64,000 nucleotides of DNA from sequence record MN871453.1, one strand, 5' to 3'. This document shows, one piece after another, positions 2,404 to 63,898 of the stretch; positions within the stretch are counted from its first letter, which is position 1, and each line of letters begins with the position of its first letter. Made by a program: the position numbers and the translations under genes. The notes under the pieces were generated by a model that worked only from the letters and a program-made list of their open reading frames with translations, made no database searches and was not told the DNA's origin.

Positions 2404-4473
2404 ATGTCAGAACAAATTACGGGATCAACACCCAGAATTTATTACCGCGGTACGAAGGATATTTCGTTCACCCGTTCTACGGGTTCAACGACGACCCTGG
2501 CTCTTCATCGACCGCTCATCATGTTCTTCGGCCAGAAAGGTCCAACTGTCCCTACCTGGATCGATCCGGTAAAATTCGAAGACATTTACGGTAGCGAAAC
2601 TACCAACCTTTCCGGCGTTTATGCGACCCACAGTACTCCTTTTATTAAGGAAGCGATTGCAGCGGGTAACCAGTTCCTGGCCTTGCGTCTGGAACCGGCA
2701 GATATCCCTGACGTCGCCACGCTGGGTCTCTCCGTCGATTGGGTAAAAACCAAAATCGACGACTATGAGCGTAACGACGACGGAACTTATAAAACCGATA
2801 CCAACGGTGACAAAATTCCGCTGGCCACGCAAGTAGACGGGATCAAATTCCGCTTTGTTCTCTCTAAAATCGAGACGGACGAGTCGGGCGTTTCCCAGTA
2901 CAAAAAACGTACCGCTTCTGCGGGGACAATCGGTACCGCTGAGAACCCGTCAACGATCACGCCACTGGCCGATTTCCGTTGCCGTTATAAATCGTCTCTC
3001 GGTGCGAATACAGCGATCCGTATTTGGGCACCGACTGTCAATTCGACTCAGGCCGCTGATGCCGATCTGCAAGAACGTATCAAATCGTTCCTGTACCGCT
3101 TCCAGCTCCTGACCCGTACCGATAAAAACAGTTCACCAACTATTTTTGAGACGATCTATAATGAAGCGTCTCTGTCGGTCGGTTTCGGTGAGAACTTAGT
3201 CGATCCGCAGACCGAAGTGGTTTACGATTTCGCGGAACGTATCGAAAGTCGTTACAACGACGAAGATCCATCGACTTACCTGATGTCGCCGATCGATGCG
3301 CCGTACCTGTATCAGTCCAACATCGATACCGTCCTGAAAGCAGTACAGTCGGTGGAATCCACCTTCGGTACGGTTTCTGACGATGAAGCGGATCTCTACA
3401 CAATTAACCTGTTCGGTGCGCAGACGGTAGAGGGTGTACCGTATCACGCTGTTCAGATTATGGGCGTACTGGATGGTGGCGTCACGCTGACAGAAACCTC
3501 CACCAACTACCTGCAAGGCGGTGGTGACGGTACGCTGGGTAACGCCAGTTTCAACGCTGCCGCTAACCTGGTGCTGTCCAACATGTCCAGCGGCGCATCT
3601 TTCAATATCGGTAACTACGCGCGTTATCCGTTCAATGCGTTCTGGGATTCCGGTTTCGACCTGAAGACCAAACAACTGATTCCGCAATTGATCGGTCTGC
3701 GTGCAGACACCTGGATCGCCCTGTCGACTCAGGACATCAGCCTCGACTTCAACAGCAATGAAGAAGAAGAATCAATCGCGCTGTCCCTGATGTCTCGCGT
3801 AAACGCTTTCCCGGACTCCTCTGATTTCGGTACCCCGGCGTTTCGCGGTATGATCGTAGGTGGTGCAGGTTATTACACGGAAACTACGCGTAAGCTGGCG
3901 GTCCCGCTGACCCTCGACCGTTTCCGTGCTTACTGTCAGTATGCTGGCGCTTCTGACGGTGTACTCAAACCGGAATACGCGGTGGATGAAGGTGAGAACC
4001 GGAAAGTCCAGGTGGTTAAAAATATTAACAACCTCGATAAATCCTGGCGCGTTCGTCGTGCGCAGTGGAACAACAACCTGGTTTACGTAGAAGACTACGA
4101 TACCGGTTCGCAGTTCTACCCGGGCCAGCAGTCGTTCTACAGCGAACAAGGTTCCGTACTGAAGGCGGCTATCGTGGGTCTGTGCGTGGCTAACCTGAAC
4201 CGTTTCGCTTTCGAAGCGTGGCGTGACCTGAGCGGTACTCAGAAACTCACCGACGATCAGTTGATTGAGCGCTCTGACGAAATCGTGAGCACCCGCGGTG
4301 CCGGTGCCTTCGATAACCGCCTGATCTTCACGCCGCATTCTGAGATTACCCAGGCCGATAAAGAACGTGGTTATTCTTGGTCTATGCGCATTGACTTCGG
4401 TGCTAACGCGTTCCGTACCGTAATGGATATGTCTTCTGTCGCATACACCAGAGAGGAATTAGCAAATGGCTAA
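2404..4473 (+). CDS. Contractile tail sheath protein, phiKZ gp29-like
   Basis: 689 aa, RIYYRGTKD...QKGP...YATHSTPFI...AAGN N-terminus, strong codon bias, GAGG SD, followed by the tube gene. Confidence 0.88.
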   Translation: MSEQITGSTPRIYYRGTKDISFTRSTGSTTTLALHRPLIMFFGQKGPTVPTWIDPVKFEDIYGSETTNLSGVYATHSTPFIKEAIAAGNQFLALRLEPADIPDVATLGLSVDWVKTKIDDYERNDDGTYKTDTNGDKIPLATQVDGIKFRFVLSKIETDESGVSQYKKRTASAGTIGTAENPSTITPLADFRCRYKSSLGANTAIRIWAPTVNSTQAADADLQERIKSFLYRFQLLTRTDKNSSPTIFETIYNEASLSVGFGENLVDPQTEVVYDFAERIESRYNDEDPSTYLMSPIDAPYLYQSNIDTVLKAVQSVESTFGTVSDDEADLYTINLFGAQTVEGVPYHAVQIMGVLDGGVTLTETSTNYLQGGGDGTLGNASFNAAANLVLSNMSSGASFNIGNYARYPFNAFWDSGFDLKTKQLIPQLIGLRADTWIALSTQDISLDFNSNEEEESIALSLMSRVNAFPDSSDFGTPAFRGMIVGGAGYYTETTRKLAVPLTLDRFRAYCQYAGASDGVLKPEYAVDEGENRKVQVVKNINNLDKSWRVRRAQWNNNLVYVEDYDTGSQFYPGQQSFYSEQGSVLKAAIVGLCVANLNRFAFEAWRDLSGTQKLTDDQLIERSDEIVSTRGAGAFDNRLIFTPHSEITQADKERGYSWSMRIDFGANAFRTVMDMSSVAYTREELANG

Positions 4474-5341
4474 GAAAGATCCGAACACAGTCATGAGTGC
4501 TAATAGTTCGTACGCTAACGGGGCCAATGGTCCCGTGACGAACTTGGAAATCCCAGCACCCTATGGCTATACCCCTGACTTCCGTTATTACCACGCTGCG
4601 GCCGATTATACTCGTCGCCCGACCATCGCGTTTCTGATGGAGTTGCCTAACTGCTTCAAAGACACTGATGACCCGGAAAAATGGGGCGGTTCACTGAAAG
4701 CGCTAATCGAGATGCACGCTCGTACGATCGACGGTATCGATTACACGCTGGAAGTAGAACACGTTGAAACCCCGTTCGGTGGCGGCGGCGAAATGATGCA
4801 AACGCTGTCCAAGGTTCGTCGCGCTCGTTCTGTCCCGGTCTTTACCTGGGTAGAAAAAGTAGGGATGCCGGTTTCCCGTTACTGGAACAACTACATCCTG
4901 TACTTCATGGGCGAACCGAACTCCAACGTCGCAGGGATTATTGGTAAAGGTGGTATTACCCCGGCTGCAACTTACCCGGATTACAACACCTTCTCTATCC
5001 TGTTTGTGGAACCGGATCCGACCGAACGTTACGCGTTGCGTTCTACGCTGATCACTAACATGCAACCGACCGGCCAAGGCCCAGAAATGCGCATGTCAAA
5101 AGATCAGACCTCTTCACCGGAACAGCTCCAGGTATCCTTGACGATGACCGGTCTGCAGATGGTAGGTCGCGGCGTTGATAAACTCGGTCAGATGATGTTG
5201 GACCGCGCGTCCCAGACGGGTATCGATCTTAACGCCCAACCTGCCTTCCTGAGCGATCGTGAAGCAGACGTGGCGGCAAGAGACGACGGGTATATCGAAC
5301 AATTAGTTTCGAGCCTGTCTAAACCTGGCGTGGCGATCTAA
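4466..5341 (+). CDS. Tail tube (major tail) protein, phiKZ gp30-like
   Basis: 291 aa, overlaps the sheath stop by 8 nt, GAGGA SD, LKALIEMHARTIDG motif. Confidence 0.82.
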   Translation: MAKKDPNTVMSANSSYANGANGPVTNLEIPAPYGYTPDFRYYHAAADYTRRPTIAFLMELPNCFKDTDDPEKWGGSLKALIEMHARTIDGIDYTLEVEHVETPFGGGGEMMQTLSKVRRARSVPVFTWVEKVGMPVSRYWNNYILYFMGEPNSNVAGIIGKGGITPAATYPDYNTFSILFVEPDPTERYALRSTLITNMQPTGQGPEMRMSKDQTSSPEQLQVSLTMTGLQMVGRGVDKLGQMMLDRASQTGIDLNAQPAFLSDREADVAARDDGYIEQLVSSLSKPGVAI

Positions 5342-13753: not shown

Positions 13754-13786
13754 TCACCTTAGCAATATATACATCAAAAAAACTGC
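13754..13786 (-). promoter_or_regulatory. Putative early (virion RNAP) promoter P1
   Basis: GCAGTT-N11-TATATTGC-N4-GTGA on the minus strand; one of eight aligned copies. Confidence 0.7.
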
Positions 13787-28953: not shown

Positions 28954-29017
28954 AACGGTAGTGAAAAGAGAACGGTAATTTTCCTATGACAATAACCCCA
29001 TGAGAAAGGTAACGGTA

Positions 29018-35632: not shown

Positions 35633-35665
35633 TCACTCGGGCAATATATACATGAAAAAAATTGG
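35633..35665 (-). promoter_or_regulatory. Putative early promoter P5
   Basis: CCAATT-N11-TATATTGC-N4-GTGA. Confidence 0.75.
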
Positions 35666-35714
35666 AGATTAATCTTATGACTTTTTCACTGAACATAACC
35701 AGGTTGAATACTCT

Positions 35715-37172
35715 ATGGACGTAATCATTGATGGTAAACGTTATATACCAGAAGAACAAGCAGAGAAGAAAATTGGGATAGCGATCTCCACCCGTAACCG
35801 ACACGACGTCCTTAAACGAACGTTAGAGCAACACGAAAAGTTTCTACCACCTAATGCCGTGGTTTACATTGTCGACGATGGGTCTGATACCCCAGTTAAA
35901 GGTCCTGAATGGGCTCAGGTGCACCGTCACGAGAAAAGCGAAGGGATTGTTGCGGTAAAGAATACTTCGCTTCAGCTTTTGATTGACGCCGGCTGTGAGC
36001 ATCTTTACCTCTGGGACGACGACGCCTTCCCTATCGCAGAGAATTGGTGGGTGCCGTATATGGAATCCCCTGAACCGCATCTGGGTTATCAATTTAAAGA
36101 CCTCGCCGGTAAAAGGAAAATCAACGATACTATCGAGGTCTTCAATGACGGTAAACACTTCGCGCTTTCGGGTCAGCGTGGTGTAATGTTGTACTACCAT
36201 AAATCCGCAATTGATAAAGTCGGTGGTTTTGATCCTATTTACCAACGCGGGATGTATGAACACGTTGACTTAGCATTAAGAATTCACAATGCGGGGTTAA
36301 CAACATTTCCTTTCGGCGACGTCGTTGGCAGTAACAAACTCATTTATTCACTCGATGAACATGAAGAAGTGACGCGTTCAGTCCCGCCAGCTGATCGCCA
36401 GCAACAGGTCGAACGTAACGTCAAGATTTATAGCGCCAGGCGGAGAGCGCGTTATACTGGTTTCGCTCCGTACCGTAAACCACGTCGGGTGGTAATGACT
36501 TGTCTTCTCACTGGTTGTGTAGACCCGCAGCGTAATCAGCACATGCAGGCGACCCCCGCTTTATTACAAGCGTGGGCGAACAGTATCAAGGGCGCAGAGA
36601 AAATTGTCTTTGCTGATCAACTCTCAGCGATGACAGGTGTGAATCTGATTAAGGTTCCCGAAGTCAGCAATCTTTCCCCTTACTTCTTACGCTGGCTGCA
36701 CATCTACCAATACCTCCGCGATAACCCGGATATTGAACAGGTCTGGTGCACAGACGGAACTGACGTTATCATGTTGAGAGAACCATGGGAAAGCATGGAA
36801 CCCGGTAAACTGTATGTCGGTAATGAACACACCACTTACAGCAACCCGTGGTTTGATAAAGTCAATCACCAGAAATACCTGAAAAAGTTTATTCAGGAAA
36901 ATAAAGATCAACAGGTTGTCAACGCTGGGATTATTGGTGGTTCACGTGAAGACGTCATGAAAGTGGCACACGGGATGATCGCGCAAGTCTGGAAAATGAA
37001 ATCAGAAATTTTCTGGCGAGAAGAAACCGGTCCTGAATCAGCGACAGATATGGTAATGTTCGGGATCGAAGTCTTCAAATTTGGTGAGAACCTGGTACAC
37101 GGTCCGATCGTCAACACCGTCTTCAAAGGAAACGGTCACGGCAATGACATCGCTTTCTGGCAGCACAAGTAG
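35715..37172 (+). CDS. Two-domain glycosyltransferase (GT2-like plus a second GT-A domain)
   Basis: IGIAISTRNR...IVDDGS...LWDDDA...GGFDPIY..GMYEHVDL; second domain VWCTDGTDV...NAGIIGG; TATG at 35676. Confidence 0.85.
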   Translation: MDVIIDGKRYIPEEQAEKKIGIAISTRNRHDVLKRTLEQHEKFLPPNAVVYIVDDGSDTPVKGPEWAQVHRHEKSEGIVAVKNTSLQLLIDAGCEHLYLWDDDAFPIAENWWVPYMESPEPHLGYQFKDLAGKRKINDTIEVFNDGKHFALSGQRGVMLYYHKSAIDKVGGFDPIYQRGMYEHVDLALRIHNAGLTTFPFGDVVGSNKLIYSLDEHEEVTRSVPPADRQQQVERNVKIYSARRRARYTGFAPYRKPRRVVMTCLLTGCVDPQRNQHMQATPALLQAWANSIKGAEKIVFADQLSAMTGVNLIKVPEVSNLSPYFLRWLHIYQYLRDNPDIEQVWCTDGTDVIMLREPWESMEPGKLYVGNEHTTYSNPWFDKVNHQKYLKKFIQENKDQQVVNAGIIGGSREDVMKVAHGMIAQVWKMKSEIFWREETGPESATDMVMFGIEVFKFGENLVHGPIVNTVFKGNGHGNDIAFWQHK

Positions 37173-37183
37173 AGGTAACTAAT

Positions 37184-37774
37184 ATGCGTATTGCGGTAGT
37201 AGGCCACGCATCAAGGAAGATGGCTATTGAGAAGCTCACGAGCGTGCTCCCTTGCGAAGTGTTTCTTGACACAGTAGGGACAGGGGCGTTGGCTAACCAC
37301 ATCAAGGCTTTGGAATGGGCAGTCCAACAGGATGAACGCGTTGTTATCATGGAAGACGATGCTATTCCGGTTGAGGGCTTTATTGAAAAAGCAGAAAAGT
37401 GGTTTACTGTTTACCCGGAACAATTCGTCAGTTTTTATCTAGGGACGAGCCGACCACCGCAGTACCAGGAATTAGTAACGCACTCAATTCTTAACGCTAA
37501 ACGGTTAGGACGTGAAGCGATCCGATTAAATCAATTGATTCATGGTGTCTGTTATTCACCCGCCCCGGGTTCTATTGAAAAGATCCTAAAGGGAATTGAT
37601 AACCGAAAACCGGCGGACTTCGCTATCGGGAGTGCGTGGGGTGACCCCGTCTATTACCCCATTAAATCGCTAGTAGAACACCGTGATGGCCGTTCAGTGG
37701 AAAAGCATACTGACGGTAGGAAAAGTTCAGGGAAACGTGTAGCGCGCTTCTTGGACGGTAATTTGATGTACTAA
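37184..37774 (+). CDS. GT-A fold glycosyltransferase, GT25-like
   Basis: VVIMEDDAIP, IHGVCY, PADFAI, SLVEH; GAGGT SD. Confidence 0.65.
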   Translation: MRIAVVGHASRKMAIEKLTSVLPCEVFLDTVGTGALANHIKALEWAVQQDERVVIMEDDAIPVEGFIEKAEKWFTVYPEQFVSFYLGTSRPPQYQELVTHSILNAKRLGREAIRLNQLIHGVCYSPAPGSIEKILKGIDNRKPADFAIGSAWGDPVYYPIKSLVEHRDGRSVEKHTDGRKSSGKRVARFLDGNLMY

Positions 37775-37795
37775 AAAGAAAGATACGGCATAGAG

Positions 37796-37828
37796 TCTCT
37801 CCCTTCCTGCATTGGCAGGAAGGGAGAG
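37796..37828. terminator. Terminator between convergent genes
   Basis: CTCCCTTCCTGC-ATTG-GCAGGAAGGGAG. Confidence 0.75.
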
Positions 37829-37830
37829 GA

Positions 37831-38244
37831 TTATTCTACTAACGTGACGCCTTCAAAGCCATCCACCGTGTAACCGCGACATTTAACGAAGGTGATATCA
37901 AAAGCGATTTTTCCTAAGTTAAAGAGCGCGTCACCTAAGTCGATCTGTTCAACCTCGATCACGCACGACGCTTCAAACGTGTAAACCGGCATTTTCTTTT
38001 CCGCGACAAAGACAATACGTTTCCCGGAAAGTTCCGCGTCCTTTTTCGCTGACTTGATTTTCTCCATCAAGTCTTTCGCGTTTAAATCGCTGTACTCGCT
38101 GTGAATGAAAAGGATGACCTCCTCTTTCAATTCAGGGGCGACCGCTTTCAGGAAAAGCTCCGCTGCATCCGACGTCTCAGCGATAATCGATAAGGTATGC
38201 TGAGATTTTAAGAACTGAATAAGTAGCTGTTTAACGGGGGTCAT
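37831..38244 (-). CDS. Hypothetical protein
   Basis: 137 aa. Confidence 0.6.
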   Translation of the reverse strand: MTPVKQLLIQFLKSQHTLSIIAETSDAAELFLKAVAPELKEEVILFIHSEYSDLNAKDLMEKIKSAKKDAELSGKRIVFVAEKKMPVYTFEASCVIEVEQIDLGDALFNLGKIAFDITFVKCRGYTVDGFEGVTLVE

Positions 38245-44089: not shown

Positions 44090-45871
44090 TTACAACCACT
44101 GCGTCGCACGTTGACGAATAGTACGAAGACTTTCCAGTACTTTCACGTCGCCGTTCAGGTACACAGTCCGCATCGCGTCAACCTCACTACCGCGAAGCGC
44201 TTCATACTCTTCACGGGTCAGGTTATCACGCAGTTCGAGTTTTCCGTTCTCGCCCTTCGCAACGATCAGGTAACCTTTTGCCGATTTCTTGGTGCCGTCA
44301 TCGGTTTTCGGGTTTTTCGCGATAGAGTAATATTTACCGTTAACCTTCCCAGCGGTCGCCTTCATGGCGATACCCAGGGTGTCACGGGTAACATACTGGA
44401 ATTCGAAACTGCCCACACCAAAGACCACGTTGGAACTACAGAACCCGTTCGCTTTCAAACGAGAAAGGATCTGTGTCATACGAGTCAATGTGATCGCATC
44501 CCCGTAGATCAAACCGACGTGAGGGTCCAGTTCTTTGTAACCCGCAGCATTGATTGTCCCGCCGAAGATTTCAAAGAGAATTTGTACCGCCCCTTTTTTC
44601 TCTTCCAAAGAAATAGGTTTACCGCTTTTAGTCGAATAGAAAACGTTGTCGATACAATAGCACTCGTATCCGTTTTCAGAAGAAAAACGACGAACGTTTT
44701 CTTCTGTTTTCTCTCGACTTAATTCCGAGTAGAGCGTTTCACCGCCGATTCGCGGGTCGGGATAAATGCCAGCGGAAAGGTGATTATCGCCATCCCAAGT
44801 ATAGCCGCAGAGGATGTGATACGGATTACCGCTATCCGGGCGATAGACCAGTTTACCGTCACGCGCCATAATCGCATCTTTATTAGCGATGGCTTTGGTG
44901 GTGATGGTATCGAAGAAGTCGTTAGTATCGCTGACGAAGCTGAAAACGCCAGACGGATAAACTTCGGTGATCAGTCGACGTTGGAAAAGTTCTTCCGCTT
45001 TCGACAGTAGTTCCGCTTCAGTCGCATCGCGATATCCCGGAGTAGCTTGTAACTGCTCGACATAGACCGCGATATTCAGACAGGTCACACTGTGCTCTGT
45101 AGCGGGTACACTCCCGGCGATTTCAGAAATCGGCATATCGCCTTCTGGGTTATAAAAGCGATTCGCTGTCCAGACCGAAGGGAAGCTATCGCTCCCTTTG
45201 AAGTAGATCAATTGACCGACTGAACTGTTGGCATCATCGAACATCCCCGACATACCGCGCAGGGCGAAGTTATGGGATTGGTAGTCGATAAAGGCTTTTG
45301 CCGCACCCGTTTCGTTAGCGTACTGCTCTAACACTCGACGGAAGTGCAACGCTTTCGTTGCCAGTACACATGGCTTCCAGAGTTCGTTACTCCAGAGGTC
45401 TTCGAAATAACCCGTCAGCCACCCGAAGCCGTCAACTGTGTTTTCAATCGTCAGGAACGGAACACGAATAGGGACGAGTGAGCCTTCCGGCACCGCACGG
45501 ATCTCCAGTGGGATATAACCCAGTTCGTGAAGCGCTTTCAGGTGAGCGGATTTCACCACACCTTTACCCAGAACACCGTCCATGTACTGAAGGTATTCTG
45601 CCTCCGATTCGTTGAACGGCGCTTTAAAGAAGTTATCGAAACTCCCTACCAACCAACGCAGAACCAGGCGCTGCATTCCCATGAACACCGAACCGTCGAA
45701 GTCCAGTGGCGTATTGAAGTACGTATGGCTACGTGCCGTCAGGTTTTCAAAGAAGCTGTCAGTGCCCAGAGGTTGTTGGTTGATGTGCCCAGTTTTGTAG
45801 GCATCGCACAGCAGGAAAACCAGCGGATCTTCAGTATAGAACTTTGGGTCTTTCAGTAAAGGGTTGGTCAT
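44090..45871 (-). CDS. nadV: NAMPT-family enzyme, likely the NARP1 nicotinamide ADPR-transferase (Namat)
   Basis: CDAYKTGH, HNFALRG, VPATEHSV, VSDT, RPDSG, LIYGDAIT, FGVGS, NPKTDDGTKKSAKG; coupled to the Prs-like gene. Confidence 0.85.
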   Translation of the reverse strand: MTNPLLKDPKFYTEDPLVFLLCDAYKTGHINQQPLGTDSFFENLTARSHTYFNTPLDFDGSVFMGMQRLVLRWLVGSFDNFFKAPFNESEAEYLQYMDGVLGKGVVKSAHLKALHELGYIPLEIRAVPEGSLVPIRVPFLTIENTVDGFGWLTGYFEDLWSNELWKPCVLATKALHFRRVLEQYANETGAAKAFIDYQSHNFALRGMSGMFDDANSSVGQLIYFKGSDSFPSVWTANRFYNPEGDMPISEIAGSVPATEHSVTCLNIAVYVEQLQATPGYRDATEAELLSKAEELFQRRLITEVYPSGVFSFVSDTNDFFDTITTKAIANKDAIMARDGKLVYRPDSGNPYHILCGYTWDGDNHLSAGIYPDPRIGGETLYSELSREKTEENVRRFSSENGYECYCIDNVFYSTKSGKPISLEEKKGAVQILFEIFGGTINAAGYKELDPHVGLIYGDAITLTRMTQILSRLKANGFCSSNVVFGVGSFEFQYVTRDTLGIAMKATAGKVNGKYYSIAKNPKTDDGTKKSAKGYLIVAKGENGKLELRDNLTREEYEALRGSEVDAMRTVYLNGDVKVLESLRTIRQRATQWL

Positions 45872-46731
45872 TTCACGCGTCCATCTTTAGCAGTTAAATA
45901 AGATTGGGTTGGTAACCCGTCGTCAGTGATATTTTCCCACCAAACGTTGGTTGAGAAAATCTGATCAAAAGCGATAGAGAGTTCGCCCAGGCCCTTAGAA
46001 AAAATTCCATGGGTCACGAAGAGACTGAGCGATTTCGGGTTTTGGGTATTGAGCTTTTTCGCCAGCTCAGTGAAAGTCCACCCACCATCGCAGATGTCGT
46101 CGACAACCAACAAATTACGACCTTCGATATTGTCATTGTCCAATAACGTAATGTCGAGAATGTTGCCGGTTTTAGTATCGCGCTTTTTGTTTGCGTAAAC
46201 GATAGGCACCCCGCCGAGTAGTTTTGCCAACTCTTCAGTTTTCTTCGCCGCGCCGCCGTCCGGTGAAACTAACACGACGTTATTTTCCCGAATCCAATTA
46301 GCCAATAAATTGTAGACAATTTTGGACTGTTCCAGGACGACGAGGTTTTTGATCAGCGCCGGGGTAACGTTAGAGTGAGGATCGTGTATCAACACTCGGT
46401 CTGCTTTCAGGCTGTTGAACAGTTCAGCAAAAACGCCGAGTGAAAACGATTCGCCTGCATTACAGACACGGTCTTGTCGCGCGTACGGGAAATAAGGCAC
46501 AACTAAATGGAGTTCTGTTTTCGCAGTGTATTTCCCAATACGACGAATGGCATCGACCAGTAACAGTAGACGCACTGCCTCGGTGGAGGATTTGATACTT
46601 CCTTCTATTTTAACAACACCGATATCATGAGGCGGTAGACCATGACGACTAATGGCGATATGTTCCTCGCCACCCGGGAAAGTTAAATTTTCATAAAGGA
46701 CCGGTTGGTCATCAAACGTAACTTTAAACAT
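45868..46731 (-). CDS. prs: Prs-family pyrophosphokinase, likely the NARP1 ADPR-PP synthetase (Adps)
   Basis: FPGGE, PYFPYARQDR, DPHS, VSPDGGA, VDDICDGGWTF, VTHGIFSKG. Confidence 0.88.
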   Translation of the reverse strand: MFKVTFDDQPVLYENLTFPGGEEHIAISRHGLPPHDIGVVKIEGSIKSSTEAVRLLLLVDAIRRIGKYTAKTELHLVVPYFPYARQDRVCNAGESFSLGVFAELFNSLKADRVLIHDPHSNVTPALIKNLVVLEQSKIVYNLLANWIRENNVVLVSPDGGAAKKTEELAKLLGGVPIVYANKKRDTKTGNILDITLLDNDNIEGRNLLVVDDICDGGWTFTELAKKLNTQNPKSLSLFVTHGIFSKGLGELSIAFDQIFSTNVWWENITDDGLPTQSYLTAKDGRVK

Positions 46732-46779
46732 TGTAACCCCTTTCAAAATGTTAAAACTTAATCTTCAAAATAAATATTA

Positions 46780-47319
46780 TCAGCGTGTTATTGGATTCTG
46801 TATTTTCACGAACGTAGAGAAACGACATCCCTCGTCTTCCCCGAATTCATGCGACTCAAGGGTCCAACCACGGTGAACGGTAGTATAAGAGAATAGTTTA
46901 CTGAGTTCTTGGATAAGATCAATGTCGAGCGGAACATTCCCTTTGGAGCGAATAGGGATTTCCGTCACGTAAAGCTTCTGTACCCGATCTAATAGTTGTT
47001 TGTAGATACTTACCCCTCCGCAAATAACAATCTCGTTGTAACCTTTTCTAGAGGCATCTACAGCGATATCTTCAAACGAGCTATAGGCAATGATATCAGG
47101 GATAGATTCGAATTGAGAAGGGTTACTTGTCAGAACGTAGTGGGTACGTCCGGGTAAAGCCCGTCCTATTCCTTTTGCTGTAGTAGAGCCCATGACAATC
47201 GCTTTATTTTTGGTTTTCCTGATGAACCATTGCATGTCTTCTTTGGAGCGCCAAGGGAGTTTATCGTCTTGACCAATAACGAAATCAAGATCGTGTGCTA
47301 CGATGAGAGAGAAAATCAT
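46780..47319 (-). CDS. folA: Dihydrofolate reductase
   Basis: IVAHD..FVIG..DKLPW..KEDM, VMGSTT, LPGR..YVLT, ICGGVSIY. Confidence 0.92.
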   Translation of the reverse strand: MIFSLIVAHDLDFVIGQDDKLPWRSKEDMQWFIRKTKNKAIVMGSTTAKGIGRALPGRTHYVLTSNPSQFESIPDIIAYSSFEDIAVDASRKGYNEIVICGGVSIYKQLLDRVQKLYVTEIPIRSKGNVPLDIDLIQELSKLFSYTTVHRGWTLESHEFGEDEGCRFSTFVKIQNPITR

Positions 47320-63074: not shown

Positions 63075-63408
63075 GTTTTCTTACCTTAACTAAGGGAACT
63101 TCGATCGATTTAATGTTGTTGATTTTATAGCGCTGATTAGAAACCCCAAAGGAGCGTACTCGAATTCCAGTCTCTCCAACGAAACGTAAATGAGAGAGGG
63201 TAGAGAGTAAAGTAACAAAGTCTCTTTTGGTTATTGGGCTCCATCCCAGGATAGCAACAGCGTTTTTCCCAACCAAACTCTCGATACAAATTTGAACAGG
63301 GTAGGTGTTAGGAGCGGCCAGAGACCGCTCCTCAATGACCGCTTCTAACCAATTGCTAAGAGGAACGGATTCCTCTAACGTGGGGATACGGTATTCTTTA
63401 ACTGCCAT
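63067..63408 (-). CDS. Hypothetical protein
   Basis: Likely start MAVKE. Confidence 0.55.
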   Translation of the reverse strand: MAVKEYRIPTLEESVPLSNWLEAVIEERSLAAPNTYPVQICIESLVGKNAVAILGWSPITKRDFVTLLSTLSHLRFVGETGIRVRSFGVSNQRYKINNIKSIEVPLVKVRKHA

Positions 63409-63898
63409 AGCTGTTCTCAAAGCGAAAGAAAGAACCCTTGATGGAGATCATCACCTTGCTTTCCGCAGGATACAGTTCGTCTAAGGCATCCGCCATCACT
63501 TTCTCAATATCGATGTCGCCCCTCACACACGGACAAATACCGCCAGTGATTTCTTTAGTGGCGGTCGAGTCAAGTGTGAGCTTCATGACAAGATCACAGT
63601 CAGCATCGACACACGCCATGACACTGACGTTGTCTCTTTCATACTCCAACTGGAAGCGGTAGTTATTATTACCTGAATTATGGATGCAGAATTCCTCAGG
63701 GATTTCCCCCGTCTTGTTACATTTCTCAAGAAGCGAAAGGACAAGATTGACGTGTTCTTTGACTAAATGAACAACGTTGTTTTTCATTTTCTCTACGGCT
63801 TCTTTTTGTCCTTTAACATGGGACATAATCGCTTTGAAAGCGATGTCAGAAGAAACAAAGGTTTTTAAAACCGCAGCAGAACGAAATTCAGTGGACAT
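63398..63898 (-). CDS. Hypothetical protein
   Basis: 166 aa, GGAG SD, first gene after P8. Confidence 0.65.
   Translation of the reverse strand: MSTEFRSAAVLKTFVSSDIAFKAIMSHVKGQKEAVEKMKNNVVHLVKEHVNLVLSLLEKCNKTGEIPEEFCIHNSGNNNYRFQLEYERDNVSVMACVDADCDLVMKLTLDSTATKEITGGICPCVRGDIDIEKVMADALDELYPAESKVMISIKGSFFRFENSYGS

Follow-up and report, generated by a model that had tools for sequence, protein, structure and literature searches.

The gene pair analyzed here has a described counterpart in the Che8-type virion glycosylation of cluster F (Cheoctovirus) mycobacteriophages (Freeman et al. 2023, Cell Host Microbe 31:1216, consulted via citing papers). In these citing papers, O-glycans are reported on the C-termini of the Che8 capsid and tail-tube proteins, and phage glycosyltransferases (GTs) such as gp110 are named as essential. 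To our knowledge, particle glycosylation has not been shown outside mycobacteriophages; for other phages the abstract of Freeman et al. 2023 reportedly judged the evidence slight, and no chemical evidence of glycans is known to us for any Gram-negative phage. Soluble virus-encoded GT-A enzymes that act on virion proteins in the cytoplasm also occur in giant eukaryotic viruses (PBCV-1 A64R; Mimivirus R655, R699). Of the other phage-encoded GTs, those of GtrABC systems are integral membrane proteins (GtrA flippase, GtrB, serotype-specific Gtr), and the T4-type DNA glucosyltransferases are GT-B-fold enzymes that depend on hydroxymethylcytosine. DNA is protected through base glycosylation by the T4 enzymes and by TET-associated glycosyltransferases.

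The pair lies in a 64,000-nucleotide stretch of sequence record MN871453.1 (the window), which is part of a ~299-kb phiKZ-like, nucleus-forming Klebsiella phage. An original prediction, made from sequence alone, had described it as a two-gene plus-strand island encoding three GT domains without membrane segments, a flippase or sugar-synthesis genes, and these claims held, the coordinates and strand of both genes exactly (Table 1). From ~31.5 to 47 kb of the window the two are the sole plus-strand genes, surrounded by small minus-strand genes, and the second starts 11 nt past the stop of the first. The divergent relatives L181 and L182 have hairpins at the position equivalent to that of the likely terminator. 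Neither protein contains a membrane segment (maximum Kyte-Doolittle 19-residue scores 1.03 and 1.19), and no flippase or sugar-synthesis gene is listed near the cassette in annotated relatives. The pair forms a plus-strand island closed by a 15-bp hairpin, and both proteins are soluble, as inferred from the absent membrane segments.

Table 1. Features of the glycosyltransferase cassette, in window coordinates.
Feature	Position	Strand	Basis
Late-promoter-like element CTTATGAC	35674..35681	+	TATG at 35676-35679, conserved, shared with virion genes
Gene for 485-aa soluble bifunctional glycosyltransferase, two GT-A domains	35715..37172	+	ORF, phrog_1579, homology, fold
N-terminal GT-A domain, GT2-like, ~residues 18-254, with DDGS (54-57) and WDDD (100-103)	35766..36476	+	phrog_2456 covers 18-254
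C-terminal GT-A-like domain, ~residues 255-463	36477..37103	+	Model secondary structure, pLDDT, invariant columns, Foldseek
Gene for 196-aa soluble GT-A glycosyltransferase, with EDDA at 57-60	37184..37774	+	ORF, phrog_854, model
Likely terminator hairpin, 15-bp stem, 9 G-C pairs	37796..37829	.	Between cassette and convergent minus-strand gene

Sequence searches connect both proteins to mycobacteriophages. Over residues 1-485, the large protein shares 44-46% identity with the glycosyltransferase of Cheoctovirus, the Che8 genus (E about 1e-125), with about 380 matching mycobacteriophage records, and in a joint alignment with gp103 of phage Kersh the catalytic motifs are invariant. The 196-aa protein matches the small glycosyltransferases of the same mycobacteriophages with 28-33% identity over 85-95% of its length; among these, we take Kersh gp106 to be the counterpart of Che8 gp110, on the basis of genus membership and gene order. 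The predicted likeness to mycobacteriophage virion glycosylation has therefore held as true homology with Cheoctovirus GTs. As in the Che8 type, a large two-domain GT and a small GT-A enzyme occur in one phage in the same order, as soluble proteins without accompanying sugar-synthesis genes. The carriers differ, however: the jumbo phage has a Gram-negative host and is a nucleus-forming myovirus of ~299 kb, where the Che8-type carrier is a temperate siphovirus of ~58 kb. In the jumbo phage, moreover, the two genes are immediate neighbors, without a kinase-like or small gene between them.

The 485-aa protein matches phrog_1579 over its full length (E 4e-203) and carries the motifs DDGS at residue 54, WDDD at 100 and TDGTD at 346. 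Together with EDDA at residue 57 of the 196-aa protein, these are invariant or near-invariant in the homologues from Klebsiella, enterobacterial and Mycobacterium phages. Further invariant motifs of the C-terminal domain are DPQR (270-273), DGTD (347-350) and NAG..GG.R (403-411), and residues 464-485 form a tail that is disordered yet conserved. The N-terminal domain is found on its own in cluster C-type mycobacteriophages. The label 'GT2-like' originally given to it is sub-threshold in Pfam for the window protein (PF00535, 14.5 bits against a gathering threshold of 23.3), though 20 of 25 family members match (best E 5e-7) and some homologues carry a precomputed PF00535 hit. The C-terminal half has no Pfam family match.

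Since sequence and profile searches of both proteins against PDB sequences yielded chance-level matches only, we used fold comparison. In Foldseek searches with AlphaFold models of the large and the small protein (pLDDT 77 and 92, respectively), three GT-A-type domains were found in total, in agreement with the three motif-bearing GT domains originally predicted. The C-terminal half of the large protein matched two-domain GTs and GT6-type enzymes. The best matches to the 485-aa model were Pasteurella heparosan synthase 2 (PmHS2) and E. coli K4 chondroitin polymerase (K4CP), which likewise comprise two GT-A domains in one chain. Sequence identity to these is about 10% and TM-scores are about 0.3, the latter being low because the domain orientation differs; unlike the function considered here, theirs is to polymerize free polysaccharide.

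The 196-aa protein matches phrog_854 (E 1e-47), and its homologues are found alongside those of the large enzyme, in mycobacteriophages and in enterobacterial phages. The Foldseek neighbors of its model are Mimivirus R655 and R699, LH3, POMGnT1, COLGALT1, ppGalNAc-T2, STIV A197 and PBCV-1 A64R. These are mostly protein glycosyltransferases, and this model-based prediction supports a protein acceptor. The connection to the giant-virus enzymes is one of fold and strategy only: no sequence homology to them is detectable, and they differ in hosts, acceptor sites and glycans. The same distinction applies to the original label 'GT25-like', which failed at the sequence level: the Pfam GT25 family (PF01755) scores 13.5 bits against a threshold of 24, over 52 residues only, and is matched by just 2 of 32 homologues. 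Resemblance to the GT25 enzyme COLGALT1 (Foldseek E about 1e-3) exists at the level of fold alone.

The N-terminal domain of the large enzyme also resembles TAGT (PF20691), which bears on the question of whether the enzymes glycosylate phage DNA bases, such as a hydroxymethyl-pyrimidine, and so guard the genome from host nucleases. This was the alternative named in the original prediction, and it is weakly supported at best. In its favor, the TAGT matches run along nearly the whole profile, reaching 13.1 bits (E 0.09) in the window protein and a best E of 0.011 among the 13 of 25 family members that match. In addition, the R...DDD...E motifs are loosely like those of GT-A DNA glycosyltransferases (bioRxiv 10.1101/2023.12.21.572611), and the possibility was weighed in the early paper on phage Tweety (PMC2884959). 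Against it, the resemblance is distant, and every TAGT score lies under the curated cut-off of 27.5 bits. DNA-base modification pathways are usually clustered (bioRxiv 10.1101/2023.12.21.572611), yet there is no 5-methylpyrimidine dioxygenase, C5-methyltransferase or hydroxymethylase beside the cassette. Unlike the T4 type, the cassette domains are all GT-A-like, and no hydroxymethylase is annotated in the genome.

The nucleotide genes of a relative, comprising a ThyA-family enzyme, DHFR, thymidylate kinase and dUTPase, look canonical. We considered its long 'thymidylate synthetase' as a candidate hydroxymethylase and rejected it, as it belongs to the ThyA family, which it matches in two stretches around an insertion; Pfam cannot separate the two subfamilies, however, and the call also leans on the presence of DHFR. 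Two further points speak against DNA as the acceptor: the same pair sits inside late structural operons of ~40-kb lambdoid and HK97-like temperate phages, and, as inferred from chimallivirus biology, the DNA of a nucleus-forming phage would be sequestered from cytoplasmic enzymes. As DNA glycosylation also gives no reason for the C-terminal tags on capsid and tail-tube proteins that track the module (see below), we regard it as very unlikely.

Outside the jumbo clade, the closest sequence relatives of the cassette are found in enterobacterial phages and prophages, whose homologues of the 485-aa protein are 53-58% identical to it and which carry both genes in unchanged order. Carriers of the pair include HK542, mEp390, ECP1, Fostie, Cronobacter ENT39118 and ENT47670, Salmonella FSL SP-016, Aeromonas AsXd-1 and many prophages. 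A survey of homologue neighborhoods, proposed as a check along with the original prediction, bears out what had there been suggested, a similar pair among the morphogenesis genes of enterobacterial prophages. In Cronobacter phage ENT47670 the pair comes immediately behind the gene for the major tail subunit; in E. coli phage Fostie and in Klebsiella prophages it is flanked by the lysis genes and HNH-terminase. Location in late or morphogenesis operons is common to many enterobacterial temperate phages. We found no published functional study of their pair in the literature searched. In these phages the two genes overlap and are embedded in the late structural operon, whereas the jumbo pair stands apart as a plus-strand island that has a promoter-like element and a terminator of its own.

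This context bears on a second alternative, namely that the enzymes modify, at the cytoplasmic face, the LPS core, O-antigen or capsule precursors of the host envelope and thereby block superinfection or change a receptor, as a conversion or 'moron' function. In support, PHROGs places all three families in 'moron, auxiliary metabolic gene and host takeover', and the folds are like those of polysaccharide synthases (PmHS2, K4CP, KfiA) and LPS-type GT-A enzymes. Furthermore, cyanophage GT clusters were read as surface-polysaccharide modifiers in a jumbo-phage comparison (PMC7824862), and the slot between lysis and terminase genes in temperate phages often holds accessory genes. On the other hand, the cassette has no membrane segments, flippase or lipid-carrier enzyme and is therefore not of the GtrABC type. 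The temperate pair lies within the antiterminator-dependent late operon, or between tail-tube and tail-assembly genes, a placement that we infer to be poor for a gene meant for expression in the lysogen, and late expression is soon followed by host lysis. Envelope modification also leaves the co-occurrence of tag and module on virion proteins unexplained, and we consider it highly improbable.

The evidence that links the module to virion proteins comes from their C-termini. The Che8 capsid protein gp6 (PDB 8E16) ends in TGS, and among 14 structural proteins of Kersh, which belongs to the same genus, only the capsid (TGS) and major tail protein (DGS) have such an ending. We surveyed 79 temperate-size IMG/VR loci with the module and found that 105 of 108 members of six protein families (two capsid, three tail-tube and one Ad1 adaptor) end in GS or TS, compared to 12 of 1887 other ORFs (0.6%). 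The comparison between loci with and without the pair gave the same picture: of the loci with it, 22 of 23 encode an HK97-type capsid protein with a GS ending, compared to 0 of 34 without it (Fisher p 7e-15), while the overall identity of these proteins is equal in both sets. These tests are not phylogenetically independent. As a co-occurrence, the tracking of module presence by a C-terminal serine tag on capsid and tail-tube proteins is shown; it is new relative to the original prediction, and the tag offers a simple sequence rule for predicting modified virion proteins.

The jumbo clade has Ser-ending virion proteins as well, a likeness it shares with Che8 gp6 and the enterobacterial temperate phages. 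Its capsid proteins end in Ser in all five GT-positive lineages (three PAS, one SGS, one AGS) and in none of seven GT-negative relatives (GG, KP, AP, GE or QA). The SGS and AGS capsid genes were linked to GT-bearing contigs via the same sequencing runs (SRR23468752 and SRR33317146), not by a shared contig. GT-positive phages have FGS or SAGS at the end of a 178-aa virion protein that is without relatives among solved structures; in phage 2050HW, which is GT-negative, the ending is PAA. Nevertheless, the Che8 pattern is only half reproduced in the jumbo phage, as neither the tail tube (window 4466-5341, ending GVAI) nor the sheath (window 2404-4473, ending LANG) is tagged; the untagged tube is inferred to be buried under the sheath. 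A second difference to Che8 is that the capsid protein of the window phage ends in Pro-Ala-Ser, Ala-Ser being rarer than Gly-Ser or Thr-Ser, and that glycans are undemonstrated. Across the jumbo proteome, GS endings are not clearly more common than in a GT-negative relative (7/342 vs 2/158), and we draw no support from them.

A third alternative retains protein glycosylation and assumes acceptors other than the capsid, such as small tail-fiber-associated proteins, other virion proteins or host proteins. It is supported by three unrelated small proteins in the tail-fiber/depolymerase cluster of a relative, which end in GS (without a comparative control), by the 166-aa product of window ORF 63398-63898, which also ends in GS, and by the rarer AS form of the capsid tag in the window phage. 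Against it stands the capsid Ser ending, present in every GT-positive jumbo lineage and in no GT-negative one examined. We judge this alternative unlikely, and note that it overlaps with glycosylation of the capsid without excluding it.

We consider it likely that the cassette is a Che8-type module for O-glycosylation of virion proteins, an inference that lacks chemical demonstration. What the analysis demonstrates is the homology, the folds of the domains, the conservation of the catalytic motifs, the genomic context and the fact that tag and module co-occur; enzyme activity, sugar donors, acceptor residue, late timing and any effects on stability or antibody recognition are all inferred. Under this proposal, the cassette would be transcribed late, probably by the phage non-virion RNA polymerase at the TATGAC element, and the two soluble enzymes with their three GT-A catalytic centers would draw on host nucleotide-sugars in the cytoplasm, building a short glycan stepwise on a serine that forms the very C-terminus of exposed virion proteins. 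In cryo-EM of phage phiKp24, the C-terminal loops of the capsid protein (ending at S597) are at the center of each hexamer (PMC9700779), and in phiKZ it is chiefly the C-terminal arm that sets the two capsid proteins apart (PMC11297242). The best-supported acceptor in the jumbo phage would be the major capsid protein, whose Pro-Ala-Ser tail is placed at the hexamer center by the phiKp24 structure, and a second candidate the 178-aa virion protein where it ends in Gly-Ser. The outcome may be a sugar coat over the capsid surface, provided that the terminal serine faces outward. Stepwise virion glycosylation in a Gram-negative jumbo phage, as originally predicted, is in this sense well supported by inference, with the glycans not shown chemically.

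A bolder reading, which in our view could as well prove wrong as right, is that virion glycosylation is a widespread mobile two-gene system rather than a mycobacteriophage peculiarity, with the tag as a portable acceptor code and, in Klebsiella chimalliviruses, with six glycans clustered in the middle of each capsid hexamer. If true, the acceptor code would be a terminal Gly/Thr/Ala-Ser-COOH on any exposed virion protein, spread over phages of Actinobacteria and Proteobacteria, and a glycosylated plug would account, at least in part, for the unexplained 'pore' in the capsid map of phiKp24. If the pair does glycosylate virion proteins, sugar-coated capsids and tails would exist in many coliphages, in Salmonella, Cronobacter and Aeromonas phages and in the Klebsiella jumbo clade, some relatives of which are under study for therapy. 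This would bear on antibody recognition, particle stability and the interpretation of cryo-EM maps and mass spectra, and the database label 'moron / host takeover' would need correcting.

The late timing assumed in the proposed mechanism rests on the element upstream of the cassette. The late-promoter consensus of phiKZ is TATG, with the G as start site, and is necessary but not sufficient (PMC4666361). A TATG had been noted 36 nt upstream of the cassette, and its position held: its G, where transcription is predicted to start, is 36 nt ahead of the ATG of the 485-aa gene. A bare TATG is not significant, however, and the weight rests on the longer, positioned YYTATGAC. This motif is not over-represented in the whole window (4 sites vs 7.4 expected), so that only its position and orientation are informative, not its frequency. 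An upstream 13-mer, GCAATATATACAT (35641-35653), was also considered as part of the cassette promoter and rejected, because each of its four intergenic copies in a relative is located 59-70 nt ahead of a minus-strand gene, one of them with no plus-strand gene downstream.

Intergenic YYTATGAC occurs at just two sites in the window, that of the cassette and one at 28983, which precedes a plus-strand tail protein gene. In the genome of a relative, tail, depolymerase, sheath, terminase, protease and virion genes are preceded by the same element, at -27 to -50. The original late-type call fits this sharing of the element with tail, depolymerase, terminase and virion genes as well as the phiKZ late consensus; late transcription of the cassette from the TATGAC element remains an inference, without transcript data. 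In relatives whose GT is 62-65% identical, the element upstream of the cassette is kept, at -32 and -39.

The region carrying the cassette is 100% identical to three records of ~299 kb that give Klebsiella pneumoniae as host ('Serratia phage KpSz_1', 'KpZh_1' and 'KpZh_LPS_45'), and 97-98% identical to the annotated Klebsiella phage KpLz-2_45 (genus Siatvirus). Since this relative has genes for split beta subunits of a multisubunit RNA polymerase, for the PhuZ tubulin and for a 761-aa phiKZ-type capsid protein, the phage is a phiKZ-like, nucleus-forming jumbo myovirus. MN871447-MN871453 comprise six unannotated GenBank records named 'Serratia phage Kp...' with Klebsiella pneumoniae given as host; names and host seem inconsistent.

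The cassette consists of a large glycosyltransferase with two GT-A domains and a small GT-A protein, with small minus-strand genes on either side and a hairpin (15-bp stem) 3' of the second gene. The few other plus-strand genes nearby encode tail proteins or tailspikes. At 47.1%, the G+C content of the cassette region (36001-38000) is the maximum of its neighbourhood, which has 43-44% on either side; this would be compatible with a foreign origin, yet the cassette is syntenic throughout the clade of jumbo phages that carry it (GT-positive). We consider it likely that the cassette is a new, Gram-negative, jumbo-phage member of the virion glycosylation system known from mycobacteriophage Che8, glycosylation itself being inferred.

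Coordinates of features in the window and, where a locus or phage is named, in related sequences
Feature	Position	Strand	Remark
Tail sheath gene	2404-4473
Tail tube gene	4466-5341
13-mer GCAATATATACAT, two copies	35641-35653; 13762-13774		intergenic; followed by an A-run and TTGG
TATG	35676-35679		inside CTTATGAC, upstream of the cassette
Large glycosyltransferase ORF	35715-37172	+	485 aa
Predicted disordered tail of the large protein	37104-37169		residues 464-485
Small glycosyltransferase ORF	37184-37774	+	196 aa; 11 nt from first ORF
NAD/nucleotide metabolism run	44090-47319	-	nicotinamide phosphoribosyltransferase, ribose-phosphate pyrophosphokinase, dihydrofolate reductase (assigned from the matching genes of the annotated relative)
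ORF of unknown function	63398-63898	-	166 aa; YGS ending
Thymidylate synthase homologue, KpLz-2_45	L010:23994-25373	-	458 aa; outside the window
Small GS-ending protein, KpLz-2_45	L011:7601-7810	-
Small GS-ending protein, KpLz-2_45	L011:12213-12506	-
Small GS-ending protein, KpLz-2_45	L011:21507-21728	+
Ad1 adaptor, temperate phage (example)	L034:8654-8980		family 49

The two ORFs and the motifs quoted for them in the original prediction were confirmed, the motifs being invariant or almost so among homologues in phages of Klebsiella, enterobacteria and Mycobacterium, and neither protein has a membrane segment, as had been stated. The GT2 and above all the GT25 labels held only in part, as fold-level rather than family-level assignments. 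Pfam matches were weak and all under threshold (GT2 E 0.03, TAGT E 0.09, GT25 E 0.065); matches to PHROGs were strong, with phrog_1579 covering the large protein at full length, phrog_2456 its N-terminal half and phrog_854 the small protein. For the large protein, AlphaFold predicts (pLDDT 77) two alpha/beta domains, residues ~1-250 and ~255-463, followed by a disordered tail. Foldseek paired it with heparosan synthase 2 and the chondroitin polymerase K4CP, both of them GT-A synthases with two domains, and GT6-type enzymes matched one domain of it. The small protein (pLDDT 92) matched Mimivirus R655 and R699, the LH3 glycosyltransferase domain, POMGnT1, STIV A197, KfiA, COLGALT1, ppGalNAc-T2 and PBCV-1 A64R, the majority of its matches being protein-glycosylating enzymes. 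The tail of the large protein, predicted to be disordered (pLDDT <50), holds several positions that are invariant from Mycobacterium to Klebsiella phages, including the terminal His-Lys, and could conceivably serve in docking or partner binding.

Full-length homologues of the large protein with 44-46% identity occur in ~380 mycobacteriophage records, mostly 55-60-kb cluster-F-type genomes, which also contain homologues of the small protein; ~155-kb mycobacteriophages have homologues of the N-terminal half. In Kersh, of the same genus as Che8 (Cheoctovirus), both genes lie near the right genome end, with a small gene and a kinase-like gene between them. According to papers citing Freeman et al. 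2023, the virions of Che8, Corndog and Myrna are glycosylated at the C-termini of capsid and tail-tube subunits, and the virion glycans strictly require phage glycosyltransferases, Che8 gp110 among them. These authors reportedly saw little evidence of virion glycosylation outside actinobacteriophages, and in the literature searched we found no report of the module, or of the tag rule described below, in Gram-negative phages.

Closer homologues of the large protein, with 53-58% identity, are abundant in chromosomes of Salmonella, Citrobacter, E. coli, Klebsiella and other enterobacteria, and occur in the cultured temperate phages HK542, mEp390, ECP1, Fraca, Fostie, LMessi, SaltyDalty, CharmingMan, Cronobacter ENT39118 and ENT47670, Salmonella FSL SP-016 and Aeromonas AsXd-1. 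The pair lies directly 3' of the major tail subunit gene in ENT47670; in Fostie and K. pneumoniae prophages it comes downstream of the Q-like antiterminator, with the lysis cassette on one side and HNH-terminase on the other. These contexts bear out the statement in the original prediction that enterobacterial prophages have a similar pair within their morphogenesis genes.

In ENT47670, Fostie and one Klebsiella prophage, the capsid and tail-tube proteins all have a short C-terminal stretch rich in Gly, Ser and Thr whose last residue is serine, hereafter the tag (GS, TS or AS). Of 14 structural proteins in Kersh, just two carry it, the capsid protein (TGS) and the major tail protein (DGS), and the Che8 capsid protein (PDB 8E16) has the same ending as that of Kersh. 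We called and clustered the ORFs of 79 temperate-size IMG/VR loci with the large glycosyltransferase. In six families, comprising two different capsid, three tail-tube and one head-tail adaptor (Ad1) family, 105 of 108 members ended in GS or TS; among the remaining 1887 ORFs, GS or TS endings made up 0.6% and Ser endings of any kind 6.5%. In these loci the tag was absent from terminase, portal and other large families. All nine Ad1 adaptors end in GS, TS or AS, and the tag is thus not confined to capsid and tube proteins.

As a control, we used 80 loci centred on HK97-type capsid homologues. Where the pair lay within 10 kb upstream, the capsid protein ended in GS in 22 of 23 cases, whereas without the pair across at least 8 kb of upstream sequence no capsid protein ended in Ser (0/34), even at equal 85-87% overall identity (Fisher p 7e-15). 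Tag counts are not phylogenetically independent; the protein families bearing the tag are unrelated, however, and among capsid proteins it appears in distinct sub-clades (e.g. locus L173 versus its sisters). We infer that the terminal serine tag is the acceptor signal of the enzyme pair.

In the jumbo phages, the capsid protein ends in VPAS in KpLz-2_45 and TPAS in phiKp24 and Centimanus, as against SGG in 2050HW, PAP in PhiEaH1, DGE in PCH45, NGG in SPLA10 and PQA in Eowyn, all GT-negative (judged from homologue hit lists and, for 2050HW, additionally by searching the first 150 kb locally). Among 24 database homologues of the capsid protein, all 11 full-length ones with 69-99% identity end in Ser (PAS, TSGS, GGNS, GAGS, AANS); neither the Moabite group (three full-length, 67-68% identity, and a 421-aa fragment) nor any of the nine at 44-53% identity does. 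The two of these capsid proteins with the canonical GS ending came from sequencing runs SRR33317146 and SRR23468752, which also gave 144-kb and 264-kb contigs with the cassette at 65% and 62% identity in the same syntenic position. Counted by lineage, the Ser ending is present in 5/5 GT-positive and 0/7 GT-negative cases (p 0.0013). A 178-aa protein adjoining virion structural genes (PHROG 'virion structural protein') likewise differs: its last residues are FGS or SAGS in GT-positive phages but PAA in 2050HW. The sheath and tube proteins of the jumbo phage lack the tag, and GS endings are not clearly enriched over its whole proteome.

The terminal serine of the capsid protein would be the most likely acceptor. 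In the phiKp24 cryo-EM structure (PMC9700779), six capsid C-terminal loops (Q582-S597) are twisted around one another at the centre of every hexamer, forming a previously unreported pore-like feature, and the C-terminal arm is what chiefly distinguishes the capsid protein of phiKZ from that of phiKp24 (PMC11297242). The KpLz capsid protein can be aligned with the deposited phiKp24 chain through its last residue; that a sugar contributes to the hexamer-centre density is possible, but speculation.

Three small proteins from the tail-fibre cluster of KpLz-2_45 (69-97 aa), without detectable mutual similarity, end in GS and each adjoin a tail-fibre or depolymerase gene. They may be further acceptors or fibre-associated factors, although no comparative control is available. 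The 166-aa ORF, which lies among small minus-strand genes and only weakly matches an unannotated PHROG, may owe its YGS ending to chance.

Two other roles for the enzymes appear very unlikely. Glycosylation of phage DNA is supported solely by the sub-threshold TAGT resemblance; base-modifying genes were not found nearby, the phage thymidylate genes look canonical, the pair is also found in small lambdoid phages, and the tag would remain unexplained. Modification of the host envelope would fit the PHROG label and the fold likeness to polysaccharide synthases, but the proteins are soluble, no flippase was found, the pair lies within late operons of temperate phages, and again the tag is unexplained. 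As a separate observation, the Pfam model of 266 positions matches the thymidylate synthase homologue of KpLz-2_45 in two separate segments; this homologue therefore carries a large insertion, which might be an intein or an extra domain, unlike its 2050HW homologue, which is of ordinary length.

Virion glycosylation had been proposed with 'late-type' expression of the cassette, a claim supported as likely by the position and conservation of a TATGAC element. In the relative, many genes for tail, depolymerase, sheath, terminase, protease and virion proteins have a pyrimidine-rich run and TATGA(C) 27-50 nt upstream. TATGAC occurs at -60 to -20 before 7 crudely called genes (2.2 expected); one of these is the cassette, and the other six belong to the tail cluster, encode virion proteins or directly adjoin such genes. 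The motif is not over-represented in the window overall; both intergenic copies there precede plus-strand islands, and divergent relatives have kept the motif upstream of both the cassette and tailspike genes. Because virion and tail genes share this promoter-like element, we infer that the cassette is probably expressed late.

The exact 13-mer lies beside two plus-strand islands, but we rejected it as a cassette element. In the relative, each of its four intergenic copies precedes the start of a minus-strand gene by 59-70 nt. The 13-mer probably acts as a promoter for divergent minus-strand units, perhaps early or middle ones. Its core is kept in the upstream regions of two divergent jumbo contigs (L181, L182) whose glycosyltransferases are 62-65% identical.
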